This document shows positions 1 through 63,829 of a stretch of DNA of 64,000 nucleotides, piece by piece. The stretch spans positions 252,337 to 316,336 of the forward strand of contig JAUPSS010000014.1 in assembly GCA_040285825.1 (NCBI GenBank), written 5' to 3'. How positions within the stretch are numbered: position 1 is the stretch's first letter; every line of letters starts with the position of its first letter. The DNA is from Eukaryota sp. TZLM1-RC (Eukaryota; Protista; Metamonada: BaSk clade). The position numbers and the translations under genes were made by a program. The notes beneath the pieces are model-generated. The model did no database searches and had not been told where the DNA came from. It worked only from the letters and a program-made list of their open reading frames with translations.

Positions 1-31
1 ATCCTCTAAATAATTATTAATATAAAACATT

Positions 32-1126
32 TTGTTTAAAGTTTTTTAATTTATTGAGATAAGAATCACACCCATCTAGAATTCAATATCCTCCAAACAA
101 GTGTCACTATTACTAAACCTACTCACAGCATTACGTTCATATTCTACACCAATAGCTAAAGGTGCCTTTGAAATCATTGTTGAAATAGACTTGAAAATGT
201 AAAAAACAATTCTATTTAACTAGAAAGTGGAATTCATTGTTTTACCAGACCTATTCAGTAACACTTTTTTGAAATCTTCAAAAAAGTGCAAGCCTGAAGG
301 TCCAATATTGCCATAAAGAGAAATCGCAAACGGCACAAACTGATATTTCACATGTTCTACTCTACCTAACTGTGCCAAAGGTTCTTCATATTTTTTTATC
401 TTCTTTTTTCGGCGTTAGATAACGGCGAATCAGCGGAATACACTAAACGAGCAGCAGAATTTTTGCAAACATCAACTGAGACAACATCTACAACATTGAG
501 AACACCATCGATCCCTGGAGCTACTAAATCTGCCCTTCTTTTACCAAAGGAATCATCAGTTTGATCTGAAGACAGCTTACGTACTAATGGCTCAATAAAC
601 GCCTCTATATTGAAACTTTTGCACATAGCATATAATTGATCACGAACTGAGTCATGAACACTTGAGCGATAAGTTATGAAATACTTACAGTTTAAAATAT
701 GGGAAAGCGTAACAACACTCTTGCAGCGACAAATTACATCATTTGGTAAAGAACAAGGCCATAGAAAACATCTCATTCTCATTGCAGTGGTCCATTGGTG
801 ATCATTAAATAGAAGGCCATAAATGTTGGGAATTTGGGAGATTAGGCAACTTGAGCAACTGTCTTCAAGATCAATCAAAAAGTTTGCAAAAACGGGATAT
901 TTTTCTTCAGCCAAGCTAAGACGTACAATATAATCCAAGTTTTCTAAAATTTTCATGATTTTTTTTCTTCAATTTTGCAAAAGTCAGTGGTAAGGAGAGC
1001 AAGCTTCTTGCAGGAAGTTCCACAATATCAGAGGGGAAAAATTTAGACCAAATATTGGGGGAAAGAATTTCAATTTCCTGTTGCAAAAAAATGAGATAAG
1101 AGCTGCCACAATTTTCAATGAGATTA
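32..1126 (-). mobile_element. CRE-like non-LTR retrotransposon family B, 5'-truncated
   Basis: CCHC-like motif (CRC..HILNC) and RLE motif (RRADL..VDVVSVD..EK); ends DIEF*-AATAAA; 16-bp TSD ATTAATATAAAACATT at 16-31 and 1127-1142; close homologue of 3558-4448. Confidence 0.85.
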
Positions 1127-1176
1127 ATTAATATAAAACATTGCCCTAAAATAGTAATTTGATTTTGATGAAAAAT

Positions 1177-1568
1177 GGATGCTCTGGATTTTAAAGCAAA
1201 AGAGAAACATAGAAAATATGATAAAGATATTGAAGAGGCAAATGTCGATAGAAATACACAGCTGGTTTTTATTGCTTTCCCATTTTCGATAAATGGAAGA
1301 TTATCAATTGAAGCAGAAACTTTTTTGGATAACTTCCAAAAAATAATGCAAGAAAAAACAATGAAAAGATTTGATATTTTTTTATGGCGTTCACGAATTC
1401 AATTTGCCATTATTAGTAGATTACCGCGGTTTTTCAATCGAATTAGAGAAGCTTTAGCTAGACAGCAAGCAAATCAAGATTTTGTAGAGGAAATCTTGGT
1501 TTAATGATAGTCGTCCCATTAGTTATGAGTTAATTTAATTAAGTGTGCAAATTCAATAAATACATTTA
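1177..1568 (+). mobile_element. CRE-like family A 3' fragment
   Basis: ORF end ARQQANQDFVEEILV plus the family 3'UTR ending CAATAAA; TSD ATGAAAAAT at 1168-1176 and 1569-1577. Confidence 0.9.
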
Positions 1569-2786
1569 ATGAAAAATCAAATTTTAAATACTTTTCCCTT
1601 TTAGAATTACTGGGAAGTAAAAGAGGGATCTGGTCATTAATGAAAAGCGAAGTAATTGATGAGACTTTGTTTCTCATTGCAGAAGTTTCGCCATCAATAT
1701 CTCTACATCCTTCTAGAAGGATGGATTTAACTTTGTTGATGAATGATGAGAAGTTTTTCTTATCTTGCTTTTTCAGGACGTTGCTGTTTCTCTTAACATC
1801 ATAATAAAACATCGACAAACCGATCCAAGAAATCACAGTAATGCTTCTGGATGCTATTTTTGAAATTCACAATCAGTTTGTCAATTGTGCAATACAAAAT
1901 ATTACTGATTCCCTTTTTTGATAAAACTTTTGAAACAAGTTTTTCTTTAAAGTGTTGGTGATAGAATTCCAACAACGGGGCACAACGAGAATTTTGCAAA
2001 GCTGTTGTTGTCTTTGCGTTAAGGAAACTTTCGTCCTCGTATTGGGACGTGACCACAAGAAAAGCGTCAAGAAATAATTGGGTTTCAATTTTGGGTAAAA
2101 TAGGATTTGGGTTCAAGTCAAAAAGATGCAAATAATAACCACAAATGAATTCTAAACCAACAATAGAAATTTCCTGACACCTAATTACTGCCTCATCGAT
2201 CACTTCAATCATTTTCGCATCTCTGATGACATTTTTTAGACTGTCCTTATAACCATCATAAGGTTTATGTTTAACAGTTTCCATGAATTGGTCATTGTTA
2301 AAGAAATTAAATAATTTCATGGTTAAATCTGTATCCCTTAAACAATAAACTGCAACTGCAGTTCTTCTTTGGGATAAGGAAAAATCTGAGAAGGTATCAT
2401 CTTCTTGAACCTTCCAATACTTTGCAATATATTGAGGATCAAGGTCAATTTTACTTTCCCCTAATAAAACTTTAGAAACTGTGTTGAGTTTGCGTGGTTG
2501 ATAATAATTTGTGTAAAAACTACAAGTATCAACAACAAATCGACCAGCAATTAAGGGGTTCAAGTGTTTGTGATTCAATTCTATTAAATTTGAGTTATAG
2601 AATTGAACCCATTCGGTAGCACCGATTTCACCCTTAAAAAAGTCCTCATTTTCAGAACGTTTCATAATATGTGGAATGTCAAATTTGAGAATATTGAAAC
2701 CACATATTATATGAGGATTATAAGTTTCAAATAATTTTTTAAATGAACTCAGCAATTCTTTTTCAGAGGAATGATGATATAAAGCT

Positions 2787-3072
2787 ATGGCATGTGCTCC
2801 TCTTGAGAGGAAACAAAACACTGCCGTTGTTCAACCTTCTCATAAACATCGTTCTGCTTCTCCTGAAGTGCGTTCTTTCTCGCCCCCTCATAAACGTAGA
2901 CATTCTGACAACGAAGATGACTATAGAATCAAAGTCAAACGCTCTTCATCCCGCCATTACCGCCGCCGTACTATTACCGTATTTCTGTCAAACTAATCCG
3001 TGATCGTAATGGAAAAAGTATAGGTATGGGGTAAGTTGAATTTCCCAGCAAAGATTATGTTTTGAAGGCTGT
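2787..3072 (+). pseudogene. RS/RRM splicing-factor (RBM39-like) gene fragment
   Basis: RS-rich stretch, RNP2-like RTITVFLSN, then a decayed IRDRNGK/RNP1 segment in another frame; second copy at 17739-17880. Confidence 0.5.
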
Positions 3073-3557
3073 TTTGTACCTCATTTTCAATAGAAAATTT
3101 CATTGAAAAAGAAATTTGTTCTGTAAATTTGATGTTCTGAAAGTAATTACACCATGTCTACACCTTTTGCCATCTTGTACTTTCAGCTCAACAATAGAAA
3201 ACATTGTTAGCAACCTGTTGAAATCAAGCTCAAAAATGTTTTTAATTTTTGATCTCCACCAAAATGACTGGTTATCATATTTGAGTAGCTTTGACAAGCT
3301 TCGACCATTTGATTAAGTCACATTTGAACGCTTATTCAACAATTTTATGCTGACTCGGCTATATTGTTTCCTGATGTCGAATTATTAAAAAGTACCTCGT
3401 TAATTACTTGTCGGTATAAGAAACCCAACGAAGCCAAGAATCTCACGTTGCGTTTTTGTCCAATCACTAAATCAACTATAACTCCAGTGATAATCTACTA
3501 CTACTGCACTATTCTCATATTCTGGTATCGTGGAATTTTCAGTAGACAAGTTACCGT

Positions 3558-4448
3558 CTTAGCTTGGCTAAGGAAAAAAATCCCGTTTTTGCAAACTTTT
3601 TGATTGATCTTGAAGACAGTTGCTCAAGTTGCTTAATCTCCCAAATTCCCAACATTTACGGCCTTCTACTTAATGATCACCAATGGACCACTGCAATGAG
3701 ATTGAGATGTTTTCTATGGCCTTGTTCATTGCCAAATGATTTAATTTGTCGCTGCAAGAGTGTTGTTACGCTTTCCCATATTTTAAACTGTAAGTATTTC
3801 ATAACTTATCGCTCACTTGTTCATGACTCAGTTCGTGATCAATTATATGCCATGTGCAAAAATTTTAATATAGAGGCATTTATTGAGCCACTAGTACGTA
3901 AGCTGTCTTCAGATCAAACTGATGATTCCTTTGGTAAAAGAAGGGCAGATTTAGTAGCTCCAGGGATCGATGGTGTTCTCAATGTTGTAGACGTTGTCTC
4001 AGTGGATGTTTGCAAAAATTCTGCTGCTCGTTTAGTGTATTCCGCTGACTCGCCGTTATCTAACGCCGAAAAAAAGAAGATAAAAAAATATGAAGAACCT
4101 TTGGCACAGTTAGGTAGAGTGGAACATGTGAAATATCAGTTTGTGCCGTTTGCAATTTCTCTTTTTGGCAATATTGGACCTTCAGGCTTGCACTTTTTGG
4201 AAAATTTTAAAAAAGTGTTACTGAATAGGTCTGGTAAAACAATGAACTCCACTTTCTGGTTAAATAGAATTGTTTTTTGCATTTTCAAGTCCATTCCAAC
4301 AATGATTTCAAAGGCACTTTTAGCTATTGGTGTAGAATATGAACGTAATGCTGTGAGTAGGTTCAGTAATAGTGACGCTTGTTTGGAGGATATTGAATTC
4401 TAGATGGTTATTTTTATCTCAATAAATATTCCAGTTTTTTAAAAAAAA
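3558..4448 (+). mobile_element. CRE-like family B, 5'-truncated
   Basis: ORF 3564-4403 with zinc-knuckle and RLE motifs; AATAAA and A-tail; 10-bp TSD AAGTTACCGT at 3548-3557 and 4449-4458. Confidence 0.9.
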
Positions 4449-4608: not shown

Positions 4609-4973
4609 ATTTATTAAACTTACACACTTGAAAACATAAACTCGCAACTAATGGGACGAAATTCATTGAGCCAAGATTTCCTTTACAAAATCTTGATCTG
4701 CTTGCTGTCTAGCCAAAGCTTCTCTAATTAGATTGAAAAACCGAGGTAATCTATTAAGAATGGCAAATTGAATTCGACAGCGCAGCGCCATAAAGAGATA
4801 TCAAATCTTTTCATAGTTTTTTCTTGACCCATTTTTTGGAAATCCTTCAAAGAAGTTCCTGCTTCTACTGATAGTCTTCCGTTTATAGAAAATGGGAAAG
4901 CAATAAAAACAAGAGGTCTATTTCTTTCAGCGTCAGCTTCTTCAATATCTTTGTCATATTTTCTATGTTTTCT
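4609..4973 (-). mobile_element. CRE-like family A 3' fragment, diverged
   Basis: Reverse complement matches the family A C-terminus and 3'UTR (..gtcccattagtt..). Confidence 0.8.
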
Positions 4974-5757
4974 TTGGCTCTGTTTAGTTGTTTTTTGTAT
5001 CTTTAACGTACTTCAACCATGACCAGTAAAGTTATGTGAATATATACCACCTGTCGTAAATAGGTAAATTAATTTGATTCTTCTATCGACGACATTGGAT
5101 TCAGATTATGCGACTATCAATGAGGATATTTTCTTCTATCATGGAACTCCCATATCAAATTGATAAAACAAAAGGCCACCGCCACAGATTTTTTGTGGTG
5201 TCATTCATAATTTAAATTAGTTGCTGCCATTGAATTCTTGAAGAATGATAGTTTTCCCTATTTTTGAACTATTTTCAACAGCATTGAATTGAGTTATTAA
5301 TCTGAACATTATACAGAACATTTGATTTTAACGAATTAGACACATTGTGTGTTATGTTTACCAAATAGCAACACGTCTTGGAGCATAAATGTAACATAAC
5401 ACTTATCAAGAAGTTATTGAACCCAACAAATAAAGAAACTGAGAATGTGTTAATCAGAAACCTATATCTCCTCCAATATGAGGAGAAATATCTCAAGACA
5501 TTGTCTATTGACCTTAAGTAATAAAAGTCACAAATCTAAATCTGTAGCAGATTGGGAAGGAACCTTATCCCAGTTCAATTGCAAAAGATTGTACATATTA
5601 GTTCAGCGCTTCAAAAGAGTAATTGGTGATCTCAGTCAAGTTGTTATTGGGATTAGAGATTGAAGATGACGAATGCTTTTGAAATTCAAATAATTATAAA
5701 TCAAAGGTTTTTAAACGGGGAAACACTATTTCTCAAACGCTGAATCCCTCAATATTG

Positions 5758-18318: not shown

Positions 18319-21300
18319 ATGTCTCACCTCTACTTGACCGATGTTTTTGCTGAACAGTCGTCCCCATTGAAAATCATCACAGCACTTCGTGAGAAAGGTT
18401 CCTCTCCCCAACTTATTTGGATTGCGGACGAATCAACCACTGTTTGTCTGCTGTGTAATACGCCTTTCAGTACCCTTCACAGAAGACGACACCACTGTCG
18501 TTTCTGTTTGAAAGTTGTTTGCGCCACTTGCTCATCAACACCTTCTTCTTTACGTCTTTGCACTATCTGTTTGTCCTTAACATTCTCATTCACTCTCACA
18601 AGGCCCAACATCTCTTTTTGTTCCTCTCCACCTCGTTGTTTGTTGGACTCCTCCTTTGCTGAGTACAACAGTGTGTTTACTTCTAAACCTTCTAATGTTC
18701 CTATTCAAGCCGTTTTATTCCTCCAAGAATTACTTGACCGCTTCAGTATCTCTGACTTTAAATCTGATTTCTACTCTCTATCACCCAGAATAGTTTCTTC
18801 AGTGAAATCCTGCTTAGCCAATTTCAACAATGATATTACTAGCTACTATTCTTTTCATTACAAGTACTCCCACCAGGAAAAGGTTGTTCTTCACTATGGA
18901 ATTTTATTAGATGGGAACGTTGTTACAATTTCTAGGAATTTGTTCAATTTACTCAATCAGAAATTCTTGATTTTTCTCATCAACGATGATGTTTTACTTG
19001 AATCTACCATTGATGTTTGTGAATCATGGGCAAAATCAATTGTTGATATATTATCTAAATTATTTTCAGCATTTAGTTTTCCTGTTTTGTTAGTAATTAA
19101 AGGAAAAGTTTCGAGTTTGCTCCTCAATTTATTAAATAATAATGAAATCTATTGTGCTTTCAACCTTGACCAAGAATTATTTGATTCTATTTCAAAAACC
19201 CTCAATCTCCCAATCATTCCTTCTATATATATCTTAACCTCCCTTCAAATCAATCCTCGTCTATCCCAATCTATCCTCTCAGCATTCACTTCTCCTGTCC
19301 ATGTTAACATCTTCAACTCTTTCCTCGCCTTTGTCTCTCCTTCTCCCCACTTCTCTTTCATCATCACCTCCCCATTCCTTCCTTGCTCTCTTTTTCCCTC
19401 ACTCAAACAATCCCTTCGTCTTGTAGCTTCTTTTCTCCACCTACCACATGTCCCATTCTCTTCTTCTCTGTTCACCTCTTCTTCCCTCTTTTATCTCCCT
19501 TCACAGTCGATCTCACCTTCATCATTCGTTGATTCTTCCCTTCTTCCCATTCTCTCTACATACCCTTCCTTGCCTTTCCTTCCTTCATGCTTGCCTGTCC
19601 CTCTGAGACTCCCTAATAGTGATGTTTACCGGTCACTATGTTTATCATGTCACATGTCACCTCTCCTTTCCTTTCCCATTATTGCAGGATTATTTTGCAG
19701 GAATGAAACTTTACGAGATTCGTTGTGTTTTCCTTTTCATTATAGGATTCTTTATCCGTGGTCTCAGTTTGATTTAACCTTGATTGATTGGTTTCAGGGT
19801 CAATTATCCAATTCTGAGCTGATGACGTGTACATCACATGACTTGTGGTCTTCTGATAAGCTTTTGGAAGTATTAAATCTGGAAGCTAATTCTAGTAGTA
19901 GATCTTATTTTTCTGAATGCTCTCATCTCTCTTTGGGTTTTCATTATCTTTTTCTTATTGGAAAAAACTTTTCATTGAATATTTCAGTAGAATTAGTCAC
20001 TCAAACTACTGATGATTTAACTTTGTTTTTTGAGTGTTGCAATCAATCAATTTTGATTGACCGGTTGATTGATACATTTTCATTTAGTCAGTTGATTATT
20101 CTTTTTTTGACTGGTTATTGGAAGGAAAATTGTTGTAATTGTCTTGAAGTAGTTTCTAATTTCGTTATCTTATACGCAAATCTCAAGCTGAAAATTAAGA
20201 GAACAAGAAATAATTTAAGAAAACTACACACAAAATTTTCCATGTTTCCTGATTTGAAACCCTCAATTCCTTCCTCAATTAGCTCCGCTGATCCTTTTTT
20301 ATCAATTCCGTCAACCTTATCCAAGCAAAGTTTGTACAGTCATTATAAAGAATTACCCAACCCTAACCCTCATTGTTCAAGCGATTCGTTGTATAAAAGA
20401 TTGTGTAGGAAATTCAACAAGAATCACGTTGACCAAGTTTTAGATTTGACCGATACTTCGCAATCAGTTAAAGTGAATGAATCTTTGGAGTGTGATGTTC
20501 ATTTTGCCAGACAATTTGAGGTGTTTCGAAAGTTAAAATTTGGTCACAACTATTCTAAATCATTTATTTCTTCTCTATTTGACGTGGAAAGTATTGGGAA
20601 TGAAGGAGGGAAAAGCAGTGCAGTTTTTAGAATCAGTAATTGTAAGAGATTCATTATTAAAAGTGTAAAATACGTGGAATTGGAGAATTTTATGTTGAAT
20701 TTCAACGCCTATTTCAACCATTTTTGTTGCTCCTTATTACCCAATGGTTCTTTTATTGTTCCAATTGTTGGACTATTTACTGTTATTTTGTCCAATACAG
20801 ATTCTAGCACTCAAAAATTTGGCTTTATTATTTCTGAAAATGTACATTTCAATTCACCAATCAATTACCAAGTTTTTGATTTAAAAGGTTCAGCATGGAG
20901 GAGGAAAGCCAAACCTGGAAGCAATGTTTTCTTAGATGAAGACTATATTGTTAAATTTTACAAAAACCCTTCTTTAATCTCTTTACAAGAAAAAAACCAC
21001 ATAATGACAACTCTTGCTAGAGATACACTAATGTTATCCAATCTAAATGTTGTTGATTACTCACTGATTGTTGGCATAACCAGAACAAAAATCAGAATTG
21101 GAATAATAGATTATCTTGCTCGTTATAGTACTTTTAAAGCAGTTGAATCTAAGGTAAAGCAATCTTATTTTTATAATTGGAAGGGGTTAGATCCAACAAT
21201 TGTTTCCCCCCAGCACTATAGACTTCGATTTATTAATTCAATTGATTGTTATTTTTTAGGTGTTGCAGATGAAACAGTTTCTATTCCCAGTATCGATTAA
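18319..21300 (+). CDS. FAB1: Fab1/PIKfyve-like phosphatidylinositol 3-phosphate 5-kinase
   Basis: FYVE domain (WIAD..C..C..F..RRRHHCRFC..VVC..C); C-terminal PIP5K domain (GGKSSAVF, FIIK, FDLKGS, VVDYSL, GIIDYL, PTIVSP..YRLRF). Confidence 0.85.
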   Translation: MSHLYLTDVFAEQSSPLKIITALREKGSSPQLIWIADESTTVCLLCNTPFSTLHRRRHHCRFCLKVVCATCSSTPSSLRLCTICLSLTFSFTLTRPNISFCSSPPRCLLDSSFAEYNSVFTSKPSNVPIQAVLFLQELLDRFSISDFKSDFYSLSPRIVSSVKSCLANFNNDITSYYSFHYKYSHQEKVVLHYGILLDGNVVTISRNLFNLLNQKFLIFLINDDVLLESTIDVCESWAKSIVDILSKLFSAFSFPVLLVIKGKVSSLLLNLLNNNEIYCAFNLDQELFDSISKTLNLPIIPSIYILTSLQINPRLSQSILSAFTSPVHVNIFNSFLAFVSPSPHFSFIITSPFLPCSLFPSLKQSLRLVASFLHLPHVPFSSSLFTSSSLFYLPSQSISPSSFVDSSLLPILSTYPSLPFLPSCLPVPLRLPNSDVYRSLCLSCHMSPLLSFPIIAGLFCRNETLRDSLCFPFHYRILYPWSQFDLTLIDWFQGQLSNSELMTCTSHDLWSSDKLLEVLNLEANSSSRSYFSECSHLSLGFHYLFLIGKNFSLNISVELVTQTTDDLTLFFECCNQSILIDRLIDTFSFSQLIILFLTGYWKENCCNCLEVVSNFVILYANLKLKIKRTRNNLRKLHTKFSMFPDLKPSIPSSISSADPFLSIPSTLSKQSLYSHYKELPNPNPHCSSDSLYKRLCRKFNKNHVDQVLDLTDTSQSVKVNESLECDVHFARQFEVFRKLKFGHNYSKSFISSLFDVESIGNEGGKSSAVFRISNCKRFIIKSVKYVELENFMLNFNAYFNHFCCSLLPNGSFIVPIVGLFTVILSNTDSSTQKFGFIISENVHFNSPINYQVFDLKGSAWRRKAKPGSNVFLDEDYIVKFYKNPSLISLQEKNHIMTTLARDTLMLSNLNVVDYSLIVGITRTKIRIGIIDYLARYSTFKAVESKVKQSYFYNWKGLDPTIVSPQHYRLRFINSIDCYFLGVADETVSIPSID

Positions 21301-56759: not shown

Positions 56760-59700
56760 TGTTGGCGCCCTAAGGCTTTTATAATATGAATAGAAAATAA
56801 ATTATCTTTATCTCAACCACTTTTGCAACCTAAGGCAACAATAATTATTGGCCGTATTAGGTTATAGGTATACCGTTTACACAACTCACAGCTATCAAAC
56901 AGAGGATATCTTCAGCGGATATCATGTCAGTCTCTCCTCGCCAGGACACTGACTCCAGCCAAATTTTTTACATTAGACAGATGCAACAGTACGATAGAGA
57001 TGCTTCGAGCATATATACAACAACAGCAGGGACTGAAGAGTCAAATAAAGAAGAGGACTCGGGCTCGAGACCACCCTCCGCCCCTCCTCATGAGAAAGAA
57101 ATGGAACCAGGCACGGAACCACCTCCCGCCTCTTCCAAATCAAAAACAATGGAACCAGGCACGGAACCACCTCCCGCCTCTTCCATGTCCAACAAACCAG
57201 ATAAGGTTTCAGGAACGGGACCACCCCCCCTCCCCACCTAAAGAAAATGTTGGGTTAAGCTCGGATACTTCGTCTGCCCTAAAGGACTACGAAGAACTCC
57301 AGTCCGTTTTAGAAGAAATGGACGACGATGAAAAAGAGCTTCGCCAACAGATAATGAAGGACGCGGAAGCTCACCTTGAACCAACAGATTACTGTCTGTT
57401 CGAGCAGCTCCCTCCCCTTTGGAAGCAAATATCAAAATCTGGTAGAAATGTGGGATTCCAGACTCTGGGCCATAAAGGGGACCCTAATAGAGTCTACGAA
57501 TTCCCTCAAAATGAGAGAAGAGAACTCATTAACGCGTTGGACACTTTGAGTAGAGAGACCTATGGACGCGGGGCAGAACGCCGTCCTAGGATAACCGGTA
57601 TGGATAGAAAGATCCATATGATTCTGGCAAAACCTATCAAAGATAGGCCTGATTGGGAAGCCATTCATTTAGATCAGTTCGGGAGAAGGATCAGGTTCTT
57701 AGCCATCGAACGAAGGAGCAGAACCGATACCGACGACATCCTGGAAACCAAATTACCGGCATGGATGGACTCGTACTTTGATACGATCATTCATAACTAC
57801 TCAGAGGTAGAGGATGGGGCTCCTACTTGTTTCAGAGAATACATGGAACAAGCAGACAGCACAAATCCAAGTAAGTTGGATCCCGTCAGTGACTTCTTTG
57901 ACGCGGACGCCCTAAATAACATACTCACAAAACGTTCAAGCGTATCCACATTTAGGAGCCGCCCAAATAACTTCATTCAGCAATTCGGGGAATCAACGAC
58001 AAGGAAGAAGAAGTTCAGGTTCTTGGTCACGGGTGATCAATCAACAGAGCTCCACCAGAGACCTAAACTTCCTATAATTGCCCCCATTATATCTGAAAAA
58101 GAGCAACCGGTACAAGTCTGTTCCATTGACGTACTCCCTGATCACATCCCGACAGTAGATGTGACAGAACGAACAAACAGACCTACCAGAGTGGTTCAGG
58201 GACCATCAAGTCCCTCCCAACCTATGCTCACTAGCGCATCAGAAGACGAAGTCGAGTTGAGAGGACCTAGTTTAGATGAAACACCTCCTCCTCAACCCCC
58301 TCGTAGAAGAGTTACTTCTGAGGAGCCTCTCCGTTTGGAAGACCTCCAAGCTTCTAGAAACATTTTGGATATGAGTATAGCAAGTAGTCTTCAGAGACAT
58401 GTGGACTCTCAGCCTAGGTCAGCTGAATATAAAGCCCCCCACCTATCTGAGAAAGACCCTCTCAACAAGATGTCTCTCGTCTCCTTCCTCCTCAAATTCC
58501 AAACATGGGACAAATACGGACGCAAGATAGCCAATCGAAGCTTTCAAGCCCCTGGTCAATCTGATTGGTCTCGTGCTATGTTGATAGCAACCCAAATATT
58601 TGGTGAAGGAAAGACCCAGATTACCCCTGAGTTGTTATCATCACTCCCATCTCACATCAGAGAAGAAATAGACAGGGACATGAAACAGCCACTCTTAAGG
58701 ATCGACCCAGAACTGACGAAACGTTTGGGACCTCCTATCCATCATTATGACTTATTCAGAAGTATGATGATAAGTACTTGCCCATCCGGCTTATCAAGCA
58801 TGGTCGACCCCCATCTCATCTCTAGATGGCAAGGCCAAGGACTTCTAAGACCGGACTTCTCAGACGCTGACTTAATGGTTTTTCTGCTACGCAGGACACA
58901 ATTTACCTCATATCACGAGGCTTGCTCTGCCCTAGCAAAACCATGTATAAATTGGAGAAACATCCACAACAAAGTAGATGCGGACAACGAATTTGGTAGG
59001 TTCGTCGAAGATTTTGGAGACGTCCTGAGGATGACCACTTATATGGTTGATCACTCCATATCTGCATCAATTAGGGGAAGCAGCGGTTTAATAACCCTCT
59101 CACCCGCCCTTATTGCAGAATATTTTCTCTTGGGTATAGATAATTTTGCCATTACCAAGGAGCTGGCAAGCCATTGGACAAGAGAAGATCTATGGGACCC
59201 TTCAACAGGTACAACTTTGTTAGACCTGATTTCGACCACCAGGCGACACTTTTTAGCTTGGTGCCAAACAACAGGAAATAGGCACACCATGGAACTTTTG
59301 AGAAAACAAGCTGAAAGAGAAGAAGACATCCCATTAGGCCTTTCGACCATGAGAACGTTCTCTAGAGGAGCAACCCCATCTGGTCCAGGTGCTAAACGTC
59401 GCTCGGGAGGCGGATCCAAAGGAACTCCCCAAAACAAATATGTCCCAGAAAGACATGAACGAGAGGGATCTAAGTTCTGTACATTCTGTAACGTCACCGA
59501 AGGAAATAATCCTATCGGTCACACGGTTTTCGAATGCAAAGACCCCCGTTGTACCAGGAGCAAGGTACCAAAAGAATTGAGGTTTAAGATCGGCGAGGCT
59601 GATCAGCCTGCAAGAAGTGGCAGTGTAGTTAGAGGCCGAGGTGGCCGTGGTAGACGTGTTTCTAGGTTTAGAGGTAGGGGCCGAGGTGGCCATTTTAGAG

Positions 59701-62700
59701 GACATAAAGGCAGAGGTCACTATAGACCTATTTATTACATAAACACACAAGAGGATACATCATCAACATCATCCCCTTCTGAGAACGTGTCAGCTAGTTC
59801 GAGCATGACCTCTCACAGACGGATTGACCGTTTCAGCAACAGGGTCAGAAACACTGGAAACTTTCCCAATCGGAAACAAATCAACGCAATCAATCATAAT
59901 CAATCAATTGCCGATTTCGGAAACCCAGTCAACAACTCCCCAACAGCTCAACAATTCTTACTAAATCCTCTACAATTCCACAAACCCAGCTCTGATATCA
60001 ACAGTATTTTTGGTATAAATTCTACGGTTAGTGAGAACCACATCAGATCCCAGCGTTCTTCATTTCTAAGATTGGAGATTTTAATAAATAATATAAAGAT
60101 GATTGCAACTATTGATTCGGCAGCGTTTTGTTCGGTTATAACAGAAGATTTGGCTAACAAATGCAACATGTCAATTAATAGAGATGATACAATTGAGTTC
60201 TTGCCAGCCAATAACGTATCAAGTAAATCGCTAGGGAGTGCAAATGGTATTCTGTCGTTCAACGTAGGAAGCATTGCGCACCAGGTACATTATAGACATA
60301 CTCTTCCCATAATCCCGGGTTCGAACAAATTATTAATAGGGATAGACATGTTAAAAACACTTGGGCTTCAGACGGATGATGGTCTTTTCATTAGATTAGA
60401 CAAAGAACACCGCACTTTGTTAAATGTAGAATCTGAATTCGACTCAAGAATCGCTCAACATTCGATTGGGACCTTAGATAACCAATCATCGAGTCCTTCC
60501 GATTTTGAGGAGCAGTTAACTAGATCTGGTTGTGAGATAAAATTAGATGATGATAATAATAAATTAAAATTAACGAGTCTACTAAGAATTTTCAGCGATG
60601 TTTTTAGTGAAACTCCAAACAGAAAAGGAATCGATTGTAAACCTCTAACAATCCCCTTTAGAGACGAGAATGCTATAGTACATAAACCTGCTAGACGATT
60701 AAATCCCAGCAAAATGGAAATAGCAAACAAAATATTTGATGAACTGATTGAAATGGGCTATGCAGTTGAATCTAATTATAAATTCAGCTCTCCTATTGTC
60801 TTAGTTATATATCCTGACGGCAAGAAACCCAGGTTAACGGGAGACTTTAGCGGTAAAGATGGAGTCAATGCCCACACGATTTCAGTAGAACCTAATCTAC
60901 CTAGGATTAGTGATATTTTAGAATTTTTAAGTAGAGCAGATTACATAGCCACGCTTGATTTACCAAAAGCTTTCTGGCAAATGAATGTAGCAGAGAAGGA
61001 CATTGAGAAAACATCAATCTCAATCCCTGGAAGGTCAATTATGTTTAAAAGAGCTTGCTTCGGATTAAAGAACATCCCAGCAGTATTTCAAAATGTAATG
61101 ATGGAAATATTCCAAATTGATGGCGTTTTCATATATATTGATGATATTATAATAGTTGGAACGACTTTCGATGAATTCTATAAGAGATTACGAAGAGTCC
61201 TCCAATGTGCCAGAAATAGACGTGTAAATATAGGTTTACGTAAATGTAAATTCGTAACATCCAAACACCCTATTGATATTTTAGGAAGCACCTTCCAGGA
61301 TAAAACCAGATTTATTAGTAAGAAAAAAATCGAAGCCTTGATGAGAATCCCTAGACCAAAATCAGTGAAAGAAGTTCGCTCATTGGTAGGATCCATCAAT
61401 TATATAAGAGATTGGCTTCCAGGTATTTCCGAATTAATAGCTCCAATTAATGAGTTAATTAAAGAAAAACCTAGAGTAATAAAATGGACCAACGAGCATG
61501 ACGATTATCTTAAACAAATAAAAGATTTAATAATTAATCACATGCCCCTTGAATTACCAGCTCCGGGCAAGCGCGTACTAATAAGTACCGACGCATCAGA
61601 TGTAGCAGTTGGAGGCGTTATTTGGCAAGAAATTGAACCATACTCCCCTGCAGGAACCCCGCTGAATAAAAGAAAAGTGAAACCTTTGTCGTTCTATAGT
61701 AGATTACTTACAGAAACACAAAGGAAATGGTCCACTTTACAGAAAGAATTATATGCAATTCTTCTGATTTTAACTGAAAGTTGTTTAGAAAGCTACCTTT
61801 TGACTAGACATCTAACAATTTTCACCGATCACAAAAATATTGCATTCCTGGCCACAGCCCCAGAGAAAAATAGAATTGTAAAGAGATGGCTGCCGATACT
61901 ATCTGAATTCGACTTTGATATAGTCCATGAACCAGGTGAAGATAACCACTGGGCAGATATGCTATCGAGGAATATTGATTTAGATCAAGATGAGGAAACT
62001 CCTTCTATATGTAGTATAAATATTCCAGATACTTTACTTTCGAATTACGAGATACCTCCTATAGACGATGATTCTGATTCGGACTTCGAAGACATCCCAT
62101 CAATTTCATCCCTAAGTAGACACCAAGACTTACCTATTTTTTCTTCTTGGTTCTCTAAAATAAGATCTGAACAACAAATAGCCAAAAATAATAATGACCC
62201 TCTATTTGAGAATGCAATTTTAGATGAAAATACTCAAATTTGGAAAAACAATAAAAATAAAATTTTAATTCCAAAAAGCCTCAGAAAACAGGCACTATTA
62301 ATAATTCATGGATTGGTTCAATCAGGCCACCCCAGCAAAAACGACAGTCTACATAAACTGTCCAAAAGCGACTTTTTCTGGCCTAATATGAGAAGGGACC
62401 TCATAAACCACATCAAAAGATGCCCAACTTGTCAAAAAACGGCACCAGTTAAAAGAACAAAAACACCCTCCACAGGTTCCCTTTGGGCAGATCGTCCTTT
62501 TGCCAGACTAAATGTTGACACAATTGGACCTCTGAATACTGAAAGTGATGGTAATAAATACTTATTAGTATTTGTAGATTCTTTTACTGGATATTTAATT
62601 TTAGTCCCTCTGAAGGAACTCAATGCCTTAGAGACCGCAGACGCTTTGATTTGGAACGTTTGCGCAATTTTTGGCATACCTATGTTAATTCATAGTGATA

Positions 62701-63829
62701 ATGGTCCTGAGTTCGCCAATGAGACTTTTAAGATAGTGTGTAATAGATTAGCTATTGAGATGAGTAACTCAATACCCCACTACTCTGAAAGTAATGGACT
62801 CGTAGAGCGAAAACATAGAGACGTTCTACAATGCTTGAGGAAATTATTAATAGATTTTAATGATTACGGAAATTGGTCTACTTATGTACCCATATCCCAA
62901 CTATTAATAAATTCCACTAAAAGCAGAAAGACAGGTTTTACACCTTACGAACTAATGTTCGGATCTTCGATTAGTCCAAGATCGGACCCTGCAAACATAT
63001 TAGGAAACTTATCAAAATTTGATTCCAATATACCTTTATTAGACGATATTAAAATGAAAAATACTCGTCTGCAAGAAAAAAGGGAAGAAGCAGAGCGTCA
63101 TCAATCATTAAATACTCCGATTTCAGTAGACAATACTAATTCGCGCTCTATAGTATTTAATATTGGTGACTATGTCCTACGTAAAACCAAACAGAATAAT
63201 AAATTACATGGATCTTGGAACGGACCCTTTTTAGTAATAGACCATCCTTCCAACTCCACTTTATTATTAAAGAATCTTATCACTGGCACCGAATTAAAAG
63301 CTGCCAAGAAAGATTGTAAAATCTATAACGCAGATAATCCTCAGGATATCGGATTTCTAAAGGCAGTCGCAGCAGGCGATGCTGAGAAACATGTTATAGA
63401 GAAAATCCTCTCAGAATATAATTCTGACTCAGGTAGTTTCTGTACTGTTCAATGGTTTGGTGGTGAGACAACAGAAGAGCCTCTCCATTCAGTTAAACAT
63501 TCAGAAGCTTACAAGTTGTTCAGCAGGAATAACAAGAAAATTGGAAAACGTACCTCTAGTCAACGTAAGAGTACCTCCAATAACTCTACGCCTTGCAAGA
63601 GGCTCAGACGCAGTACTAGAATTAGGAAGTGATGCTAATTCTCAGTTTAGATTAGGTTATTTGTAGTTATTTAGTTATTTAGTTATTTGTTTATAGTTTA
63701 GATTCATATTTATATAAGCCTATTAGCTCTGAAAAAGGGAAGAAGCAGTGTTGGCGCCCTAAGGCTTTTATAATATGAATAGAAAATAAATTATCTTTAT
63801 CTCAACCACTTTTGCAACCTAAGGCAACA
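56760..63829 (+). mobile_element. Full-length Ty3/gypsy LTR retrotransposon with chromodomain
   Basis: Identical 81-bp LTRs at 56760-56840 and 63749-63829 (TGTTG..CAACA); ACAA TSD; PPT GAAAAAGGGAAGAAGCAG; PR-RT-RH-IN domain order. Confidence 0.96.
56924..63632 (+). CDS. Gag-Pol polyprotein (+1 frame break near 57224-57241)
   Basis: Gag with CTFC-x10-H-x4-C and RGG tract; protease IDSAA; RT YIDD; RNase H STDAS; integrase H-H-C-C, VDTIGP, SDNGPEF, SNGLVER, WNGPF; chromodomain VIEKIL..VQWFG..TEEP. Confidence 0.9.

Follow-up and report, generated by a model that had tools for sequence, protein, structure and literature searches.

We propose that the left edge of the window, by which we mean the whole 64,000-nucleotide stretch of DNA analysed here, carries a dead and 5′-truncated copy of a Skoliomonas litria mobile element of about 4.45 kb that was twice hit by retrotransposons, and we consider it probable that the ancestral protein of this element was an exonuclease-coupled RNA-guided nuclease. 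In the ancestral element a single open reading frame (ORF) of about 1,461 codons would have filled nearly the whole element length. Its product is envisaged as an RNA-guided nuclease whose attached 3′-5′ exonuclease would resect the 3′ ends left by its RuvC cut. Such resection would block exact re-ligation and may thereby bias repair towards copying the element by homology or microhomology, a bias that would suit the role proposed for TnpB-family nucleases, namely to maintain or spread the elements that encode them. The architecture recurs at five loci of the genome, and the catalytic motifs of the consensus built from them are intact.

The source is S. litria TZLM1-RC, a soda-lake metamonad that is anaerobic and free-living (GCA_040285825.1, contig JAUPSS010000014.1), and the window DNA has a G+C content of about 33% with long, intronless genes. 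On its minus strand positions 1799-2821 form an ORF of 340 codons closed by a TGA stop, and by our own estimate 340 stop-free codons would arise by chance in DNA of 33% G+C with a probability of about 1e-10. Residues 14-172 match the Pfam family DNA_pol_B_exo1 (PF03104) at 4e-11, above the curated cut-off, and also the exonuclease domain of yeast Pol delta (PDB 3iay) at 2.7e-9. When the ORF was searched with HMMER against 1.84 billion representatives, family-B polymerases matched residues ~10-175, while residues ~177-339 matched the first ~150 residues of Fanzor1 proteins of 630-730 aa, most of which carry a Cas12f1-like TNB domain. The standalone Fanzors always align by their own first 3-40 residues, and their start methionine aligns at, or only a few residues from, Met180 in the ORF of the window. 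Both halves of the exonuclease-Fanzor1 gene proposed in the initial annotation are therefore matched in one ORF, with its C-terminal part being Fanzor as claimed, and the fusion as one gene is well supported.

Recurrence of the junction in the S. litria genome had been suggested as a check, and protein look-ups located four loci there in addition to that of the window, giving five copies on four contigs (L001, L002, L003, L005 and L004, the last being the locus of the window itself). None is intact, as all five carry frameshifts and stops. The copies have one layout in common and a DNA identity of 87-95%, with unrelated flanks and with different lesions in each. The junction between exonuclease and Fanzor is open in four of them; the fifth, L002, bears at this point a copy-specific 12-nt insertion bringing a TGA. 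In addition, a short-read (Logan) contig from the source sample spans the junction (window 1861-2394). The locus is full of retrotransposon insertions, which might favour a rearrangement by chance, one insertion nested in another or an assembly error confined to this decayed site, but a junction that recurs at five unlinked loci, each with its own flanks and lesions, and that is spanned by a short-read contig leaves such an accident with hardly any probability, and we regard it as refuted by the paralogs.

The 4.45-kb copy at L005 is free of insertions and retains a full-length 5′ part, in which the frame of P0285 begins ~715 codons upstream of the Fanzor methionine; its lesions are two frameshifts and three stops. 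With insertions removed, the five copies yield a majority consensus that reads as one ORF of 1,461 codons, the N-terminal 450 aa of which are based on just two or three copies. Its order is an N-terminal region of ~200 aa, a Ulp1/C48 protease, a basic linker whose sequence suggests a bipartite nuclear localisation signal, the PolB exonuclease and a complete Fanzor1. The exonuclease-Fanzor architecture of the initial annotation thus stands, although it missed the upstream half, namely the protease and ~200 aa of no recognised fold. Our searches returned no convincing relative of the N-terminal ~185-200 aa, and no Pfam match on P0285, L005 11762-12550 or L005 12553-13131.

The copy in the window lacks consensus aa 1-547 and has accumulated five frameshifts, two stops, a 100-nt deletion and two insertions (Table 1). 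It had been called dead, with ExoI missing and the 5′ end replaced, and the lesions together with the start of family homology at 2784 agree with this: ExoI is absent because homology begins only there, following 5′ truncation, and is present in other copies of the element. Beyond the window edge, in the left flank of L004, RuvC-I is intact, RuvC-II is deleted and RuvC-III is followed by a stop, so that RuvC motifs do lie where they had been expected; the loss of RuvC-II is due to the 100-nt deletion. The frame was said to be restored by excising the two retrotransposons at their target site duplications (TSDs). This splice is right and the duplications are confirmed, but an extra 1-nt insertion near 1805 also needs correcting.

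Table 1. Parts of the element copy and its insertions at the left edge of the window (window positions).
Feature	Positions	Strand	Basis or remark
Fanzor coding resumes and crosses the window edge	1-31	-	remainder is L004 12666-14084 (tblastn)
5′-truncated non-LTR retrotransposon, CCHC / restriction-like endonuclease C-terminus	32-1126	-	exact 16-bp TSD at 16-31 and 1127-1142
Short Fanzor coding piece between the two retrotransposon insertions	1143-1176	-	aligns to L001 14437-14486
5′-truncated non-LTR fragment within the Fanzor ORF	1177-1564	+	13-bp TSD with one mismatch, 1164-1176 and 1565-1577
Fanzor1 coding in another frame, past the 1-nt insertion	1578-1836	-	ORF 1519-1836; contiguous with L001 14128-14449
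Fanzor1 N-terminal helical (REC-type) region	1802-2284	-	opens with the Fanzor start Met, still present (ATG 2284-2282); same reading frame as the exonuclease
PolB-type 3′-5′ exonuclease, C-terminal two thirds (consensus aa 548-705)	2306-2784	-	Pfam, PDB, paralogs
Non-homologous start of the listed ORF, twelve codons (replaced 5′ flank)	2785-2821	-	blastn against L001, L002 and L005 ends at 2784

Both insertion sites are empty in L001, L002 and L005, and the sequences flanking the insertions are contiguous in L001 and L005. The larger insertion has an inverted copy at 3555-4407 that is 95-96% identical, and it resembles the LINE ORF at L001 12319-13932; the smaller is 95% identical to the 3′ part of this LINE (L001 12033-12295 and 13988-14125). 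Several 5′-truncated copies of the same non-LTR family lie in the window (31-1127, 1177-1564, 3555-4407 and 4609-4970). Logan contig depth over these copies is 30-200x that over the Fanzor part, and the family is therefore high-copy. At the other end of the window, positions 57000-63632 of the plus strand hold a gypsy-type polyprotein ORF of 2,210 aa with reverse transcriptase, RNase H and integrase, which looks intact.

As to how the element itself moved, neither terminal inverted repeats nor a transposase were found. Copies L001-L004 share a common 3′ end and differ in their 5′ cut-offs (consensus aa ~286, 395 and 548; 2784 in the window), a pattern like that of retroelement 5′ truncation or of incomplete gap repair, in an element without a reverse transcriptase or transposase gene.

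In the consensus the exonuclease has ExoI (FDIET), ExoII (N..FD) and ExoIII (Y...D) all intact, and these are held in most copies; in the window ORF, ExoII is N43..F47-D48 (nt 2695-2678) and ExoIII is Y159..D163 (nt 2347-2333). With the Pol delta class (PDB 3iay, 6p1h) the domain has the DEDDy motifs in common at compatible spacing, with ~30-38% identity over ~160 aa, although by our own count ExoI and ExoII lie ~28 aa further apart than they do in yeast Pol delta. Unlike family-B polymerases, it comes without a polymerase N-terminal domain, palm, fingers or thumb. The absence of a polymerase palm had been noted in the initial annotation, and no PolB homology was found in the consensus past aa ~710-713, where motifs A, B and C of palm, fingers and thumb were looked for and Fanzor1 follows instead; this is therefore not a polymerase but an exonuclease domain only. 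A divergent yet complete family-B polymerase, viral or Polinton-like and with palm and thumb further downstream, would have had sufficient length to the left of the window, but all that lies downstream of ExoIII fits the Fanzor1 profile end to end (E 1e-144), and we give this reading virtually no credence and reject it. The exonuclease had further been described as captured from the host; a host Pol delta and a viral PolB are both possible sources, the best PolB matches being just 30-38% identical and from metagenomic proteins.

The assignment of the second half to Fanzor1 draws on several lines of evidence. An HMM built from six relatives matches the Spizellomyces Fanzor1 SpuFz1 (8gkh) over its whole length at 3.8e-90, and it is this HMM that covers consensus aa 719-1436 with the E-value of 1e-144 given above. 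The AlphaFold model of the Fanzor half of the window ORF has a mean pLDDT of 81. Foldseek searches of the PDB with the helical Fanzor N-terminal model gave E-values that were all non-significant; in VIA-align, the AF2 model of this N-terminal region came out closest to solved Fanzor1 structures and clearly separated. DPGK, IGIGDW, IDEFRTS and NRD are found in the consensus, in L005 and in L001, and most copies retain DPGK, DEFRTS and NRD. At RuvC-II a Gly occupies the canonical position, with an alternative Glu (DEFRTS) ~35-40 aa downstream, and by its sequence this arrangement fits the rearranged Fanzor site described in PMC10530073, in which the canonical residue is Gly or Pro and a Glu further downstream takes its place. 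The zinc ribbon is represented by a Pfam Cas12f1-like_TNB match of 5e-7 on L005 13520-14383 and by CxxC..CxxC in the consensus. The module is collinear over its full length with SpuFz1, PpFz1 and GtFz1 (8gkh, 9cf0, 9cer) and has in common with Fanzor1 the N-terminal helical region, the RuvC-I DPG, the RuvC-II Gly with the Glu of DEFRTS, the zinc ribbon and the RuvC-III NRD, so that, judged by its sequence and predicted fold, it is a Fanzor1 on each point examined. In L002 an Asn replaces the RuvC-III Asp (NRNRN, 19484-19501); the other four copies have Asp, and within this element family the Asn reads as copy-specific decay.

Two features set the element apart from known Fanzors. The first is the ~715 aa that precede the Fanzor1 module in the same ORF, an extension that is absent in the 15 N-terminally matching relatives and in the best 120 of 778 profile matches. 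The second is that neither a transposase nor terminal inverted repeats were found. A point of agreement is that Fanzor coding reaches nearly to the 3′ end of the element, where known Fanzors encode the omega RNA. Conservation at this end is highest in the last ~70 nt, which contain a small hairpin, and no covarying pairs were found. The same genome holds a second and distinct Fanzor-like gene at L001 4083-5996 (minus strand), of 318 aa with a TNB domain and accompanied by an ORF of 299 aa; another RuvC-III fragment lies at L001 6712-6819 (minus strand). Both are a few kb from the exonuclease-Fanzor copy, so several Fanzor lineages are present. Among those met in the genome, only the exonuclease-Fanzor lineage has the extension. 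In the window itself a short remnant of a related Fanzor (5604-5693, plus strand), covering the GDW / RuvC-II region, lies ~60 nt upstream of a UBR1-like ORF at 5755.

The protease at the head of the ORF was recognised by an Atlas feature score of 0.94, with 184-195 shared features and Peptidase_C48 in 28 of 30 matches, and by a structural TM of 0.58. As its Pfam score of 18 bits is under the cut-off of 20.7, its membership of C48 draws mainly on the Atlas matches and on its motifs: HW, FDSL and Q..DCG are seen in three copies, placing the His-Asp-Cys triad and the oxyanion-hole Gln. Ulp1/C48 domains of transposons accompany transposases, for example in some MULE and hAT elements. The present domain resembles these in having the C48 fold with His, Asp and Gln..Cys within a transposon-encoded protein, and one hAT cluster is among the Atlas matches, whereas here it heads a Fanzor protein.

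The position of a protease upstream in the same ORF raises the alternative of a self-processed polyprotein, which would be cut by the Ulp1/C48 domain after translation so that exonuclease and Fanzor work as separate proteins of one transposon. The catalytic residues of the protease are intact, and the start methionine of Fanzor is kept exactly at the junction, as if it had once begun a separate product. No Gly-Gly type site is found at the consensus junction, however, and Ulp1-like domains of transposons are not necessarily self-processing, and we think processing of this kind unlikely. A coupled exonuclease and nuclease is the reading that we retain.

Selection bears on the importance of the exonuclease for the element. 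Summed over pairs, dN/dS in the Fanzor part is 0.38 as against ~1.0 in shifted frames, and changes are in excess at third positions (p 3e-6), which is clear purifying selection. The exonuclease gives a dN/dS of 0.54, compared with 0.71 and 0.92 in the shifted frames, and no excess of third-position changes (62/45/58, p 0.24); constraint here is weak or unproven, and we therefore infer the function of this domain, with activity being predicted from its intact motifs. Neither the protease nor the N-terminal region gave a selection signal, fewer copies being compared for these. The exonuclease, and perhaps the protease also, could on these data have been captured in frame as a passenger of no role, with only Fanzor being of consequence. 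The restriction of clear constraint to the Fanzor part and the absence of the extension from the Fanzor1 relatives noted above both favour this. Against it, the consensus and most copies retain all of the DEDDy residues, a domain of 250 aa has been held in frame and free of stops in the consensus, and its in-frame dN/dS is below both shifted-frame controls, and we consider a mere passenger to be improbable. An exonuclease that acted together with the nuclease remains our favoured reading, with the qualification that an attached exonuclease is not to be assumed beneficial, since engineered fusions of TREX1, TREX2 and T5 exonuclease impaired the Fanzor MmeFz2 (PMC12923547).

The principle of tethering an exonuclease to a programmable nuclease, for action on the cut that the latter makes, is common to the S. 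litria protein and to the engineered TREX1, TREX2 and T5 fusions on Cas or Fanzor, but the engineered fusions are laboratory constructs that use unrelated exonucleases, while the S. litria protein is of natural origin and uses a polymerase proofreading domain. It is nature's parallel to the fusions made by engineers and, if active, would be the first TnpB-family nuclease with an exonuclease coupled to it naturally. Fanzors are eukaryotic RNA-guided nucleases that are being developed as compact genome editors. Although all five copies are dead, their consensus is open in one frame throughout, which puts synthesis and testing of the protein within reach. The attachment of an exonuclease and a protease suggests that processing of cut ends or of partner proteins may form part of the natural role of Fanzor.

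We could not find a description of the protease-exonuclease-Fanzor1 combination for any natural Fanzor, nor of any natural exonuclease- or protease-fused Fanzor, in the literature as available, including the accessible text of the founding and survey papers. A supplementary figure of PMC10530073 is cited there for the statement that Fanzors 'often contain various domains', and an earlier mention in that figure is possible. We tentatively put forward, as a possibility rather than as our expectation, that the element encoded a natural three-enzyme effector, with Fanzor1, a proofreading exonuclease and an Ulp1-like protease in cis, and that it landed precisely at host start codons.

The siting of the copies can be read from their shared terminus. 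All five have a conserved end of ~45 nt, and the alignment continues into an ATG; the sites are at L001 15978, L002 19682, L003 14291, L005 14424 and, to the left of the window, L004 14079-14095. In four of the five copies the ATG is the annotated start of a host gene on the same strand (Elongin A, ARS2, a 125-aa protein and HSP70), and at the window's locus a giant surface-protein gene, likewise on the same strand, begins 12-16 nt later. This suggests either that start codons are targeted precisely or that the end of the element provides a promoter or start, and it provides a separate clue to target choice in a compact metamonad genome.
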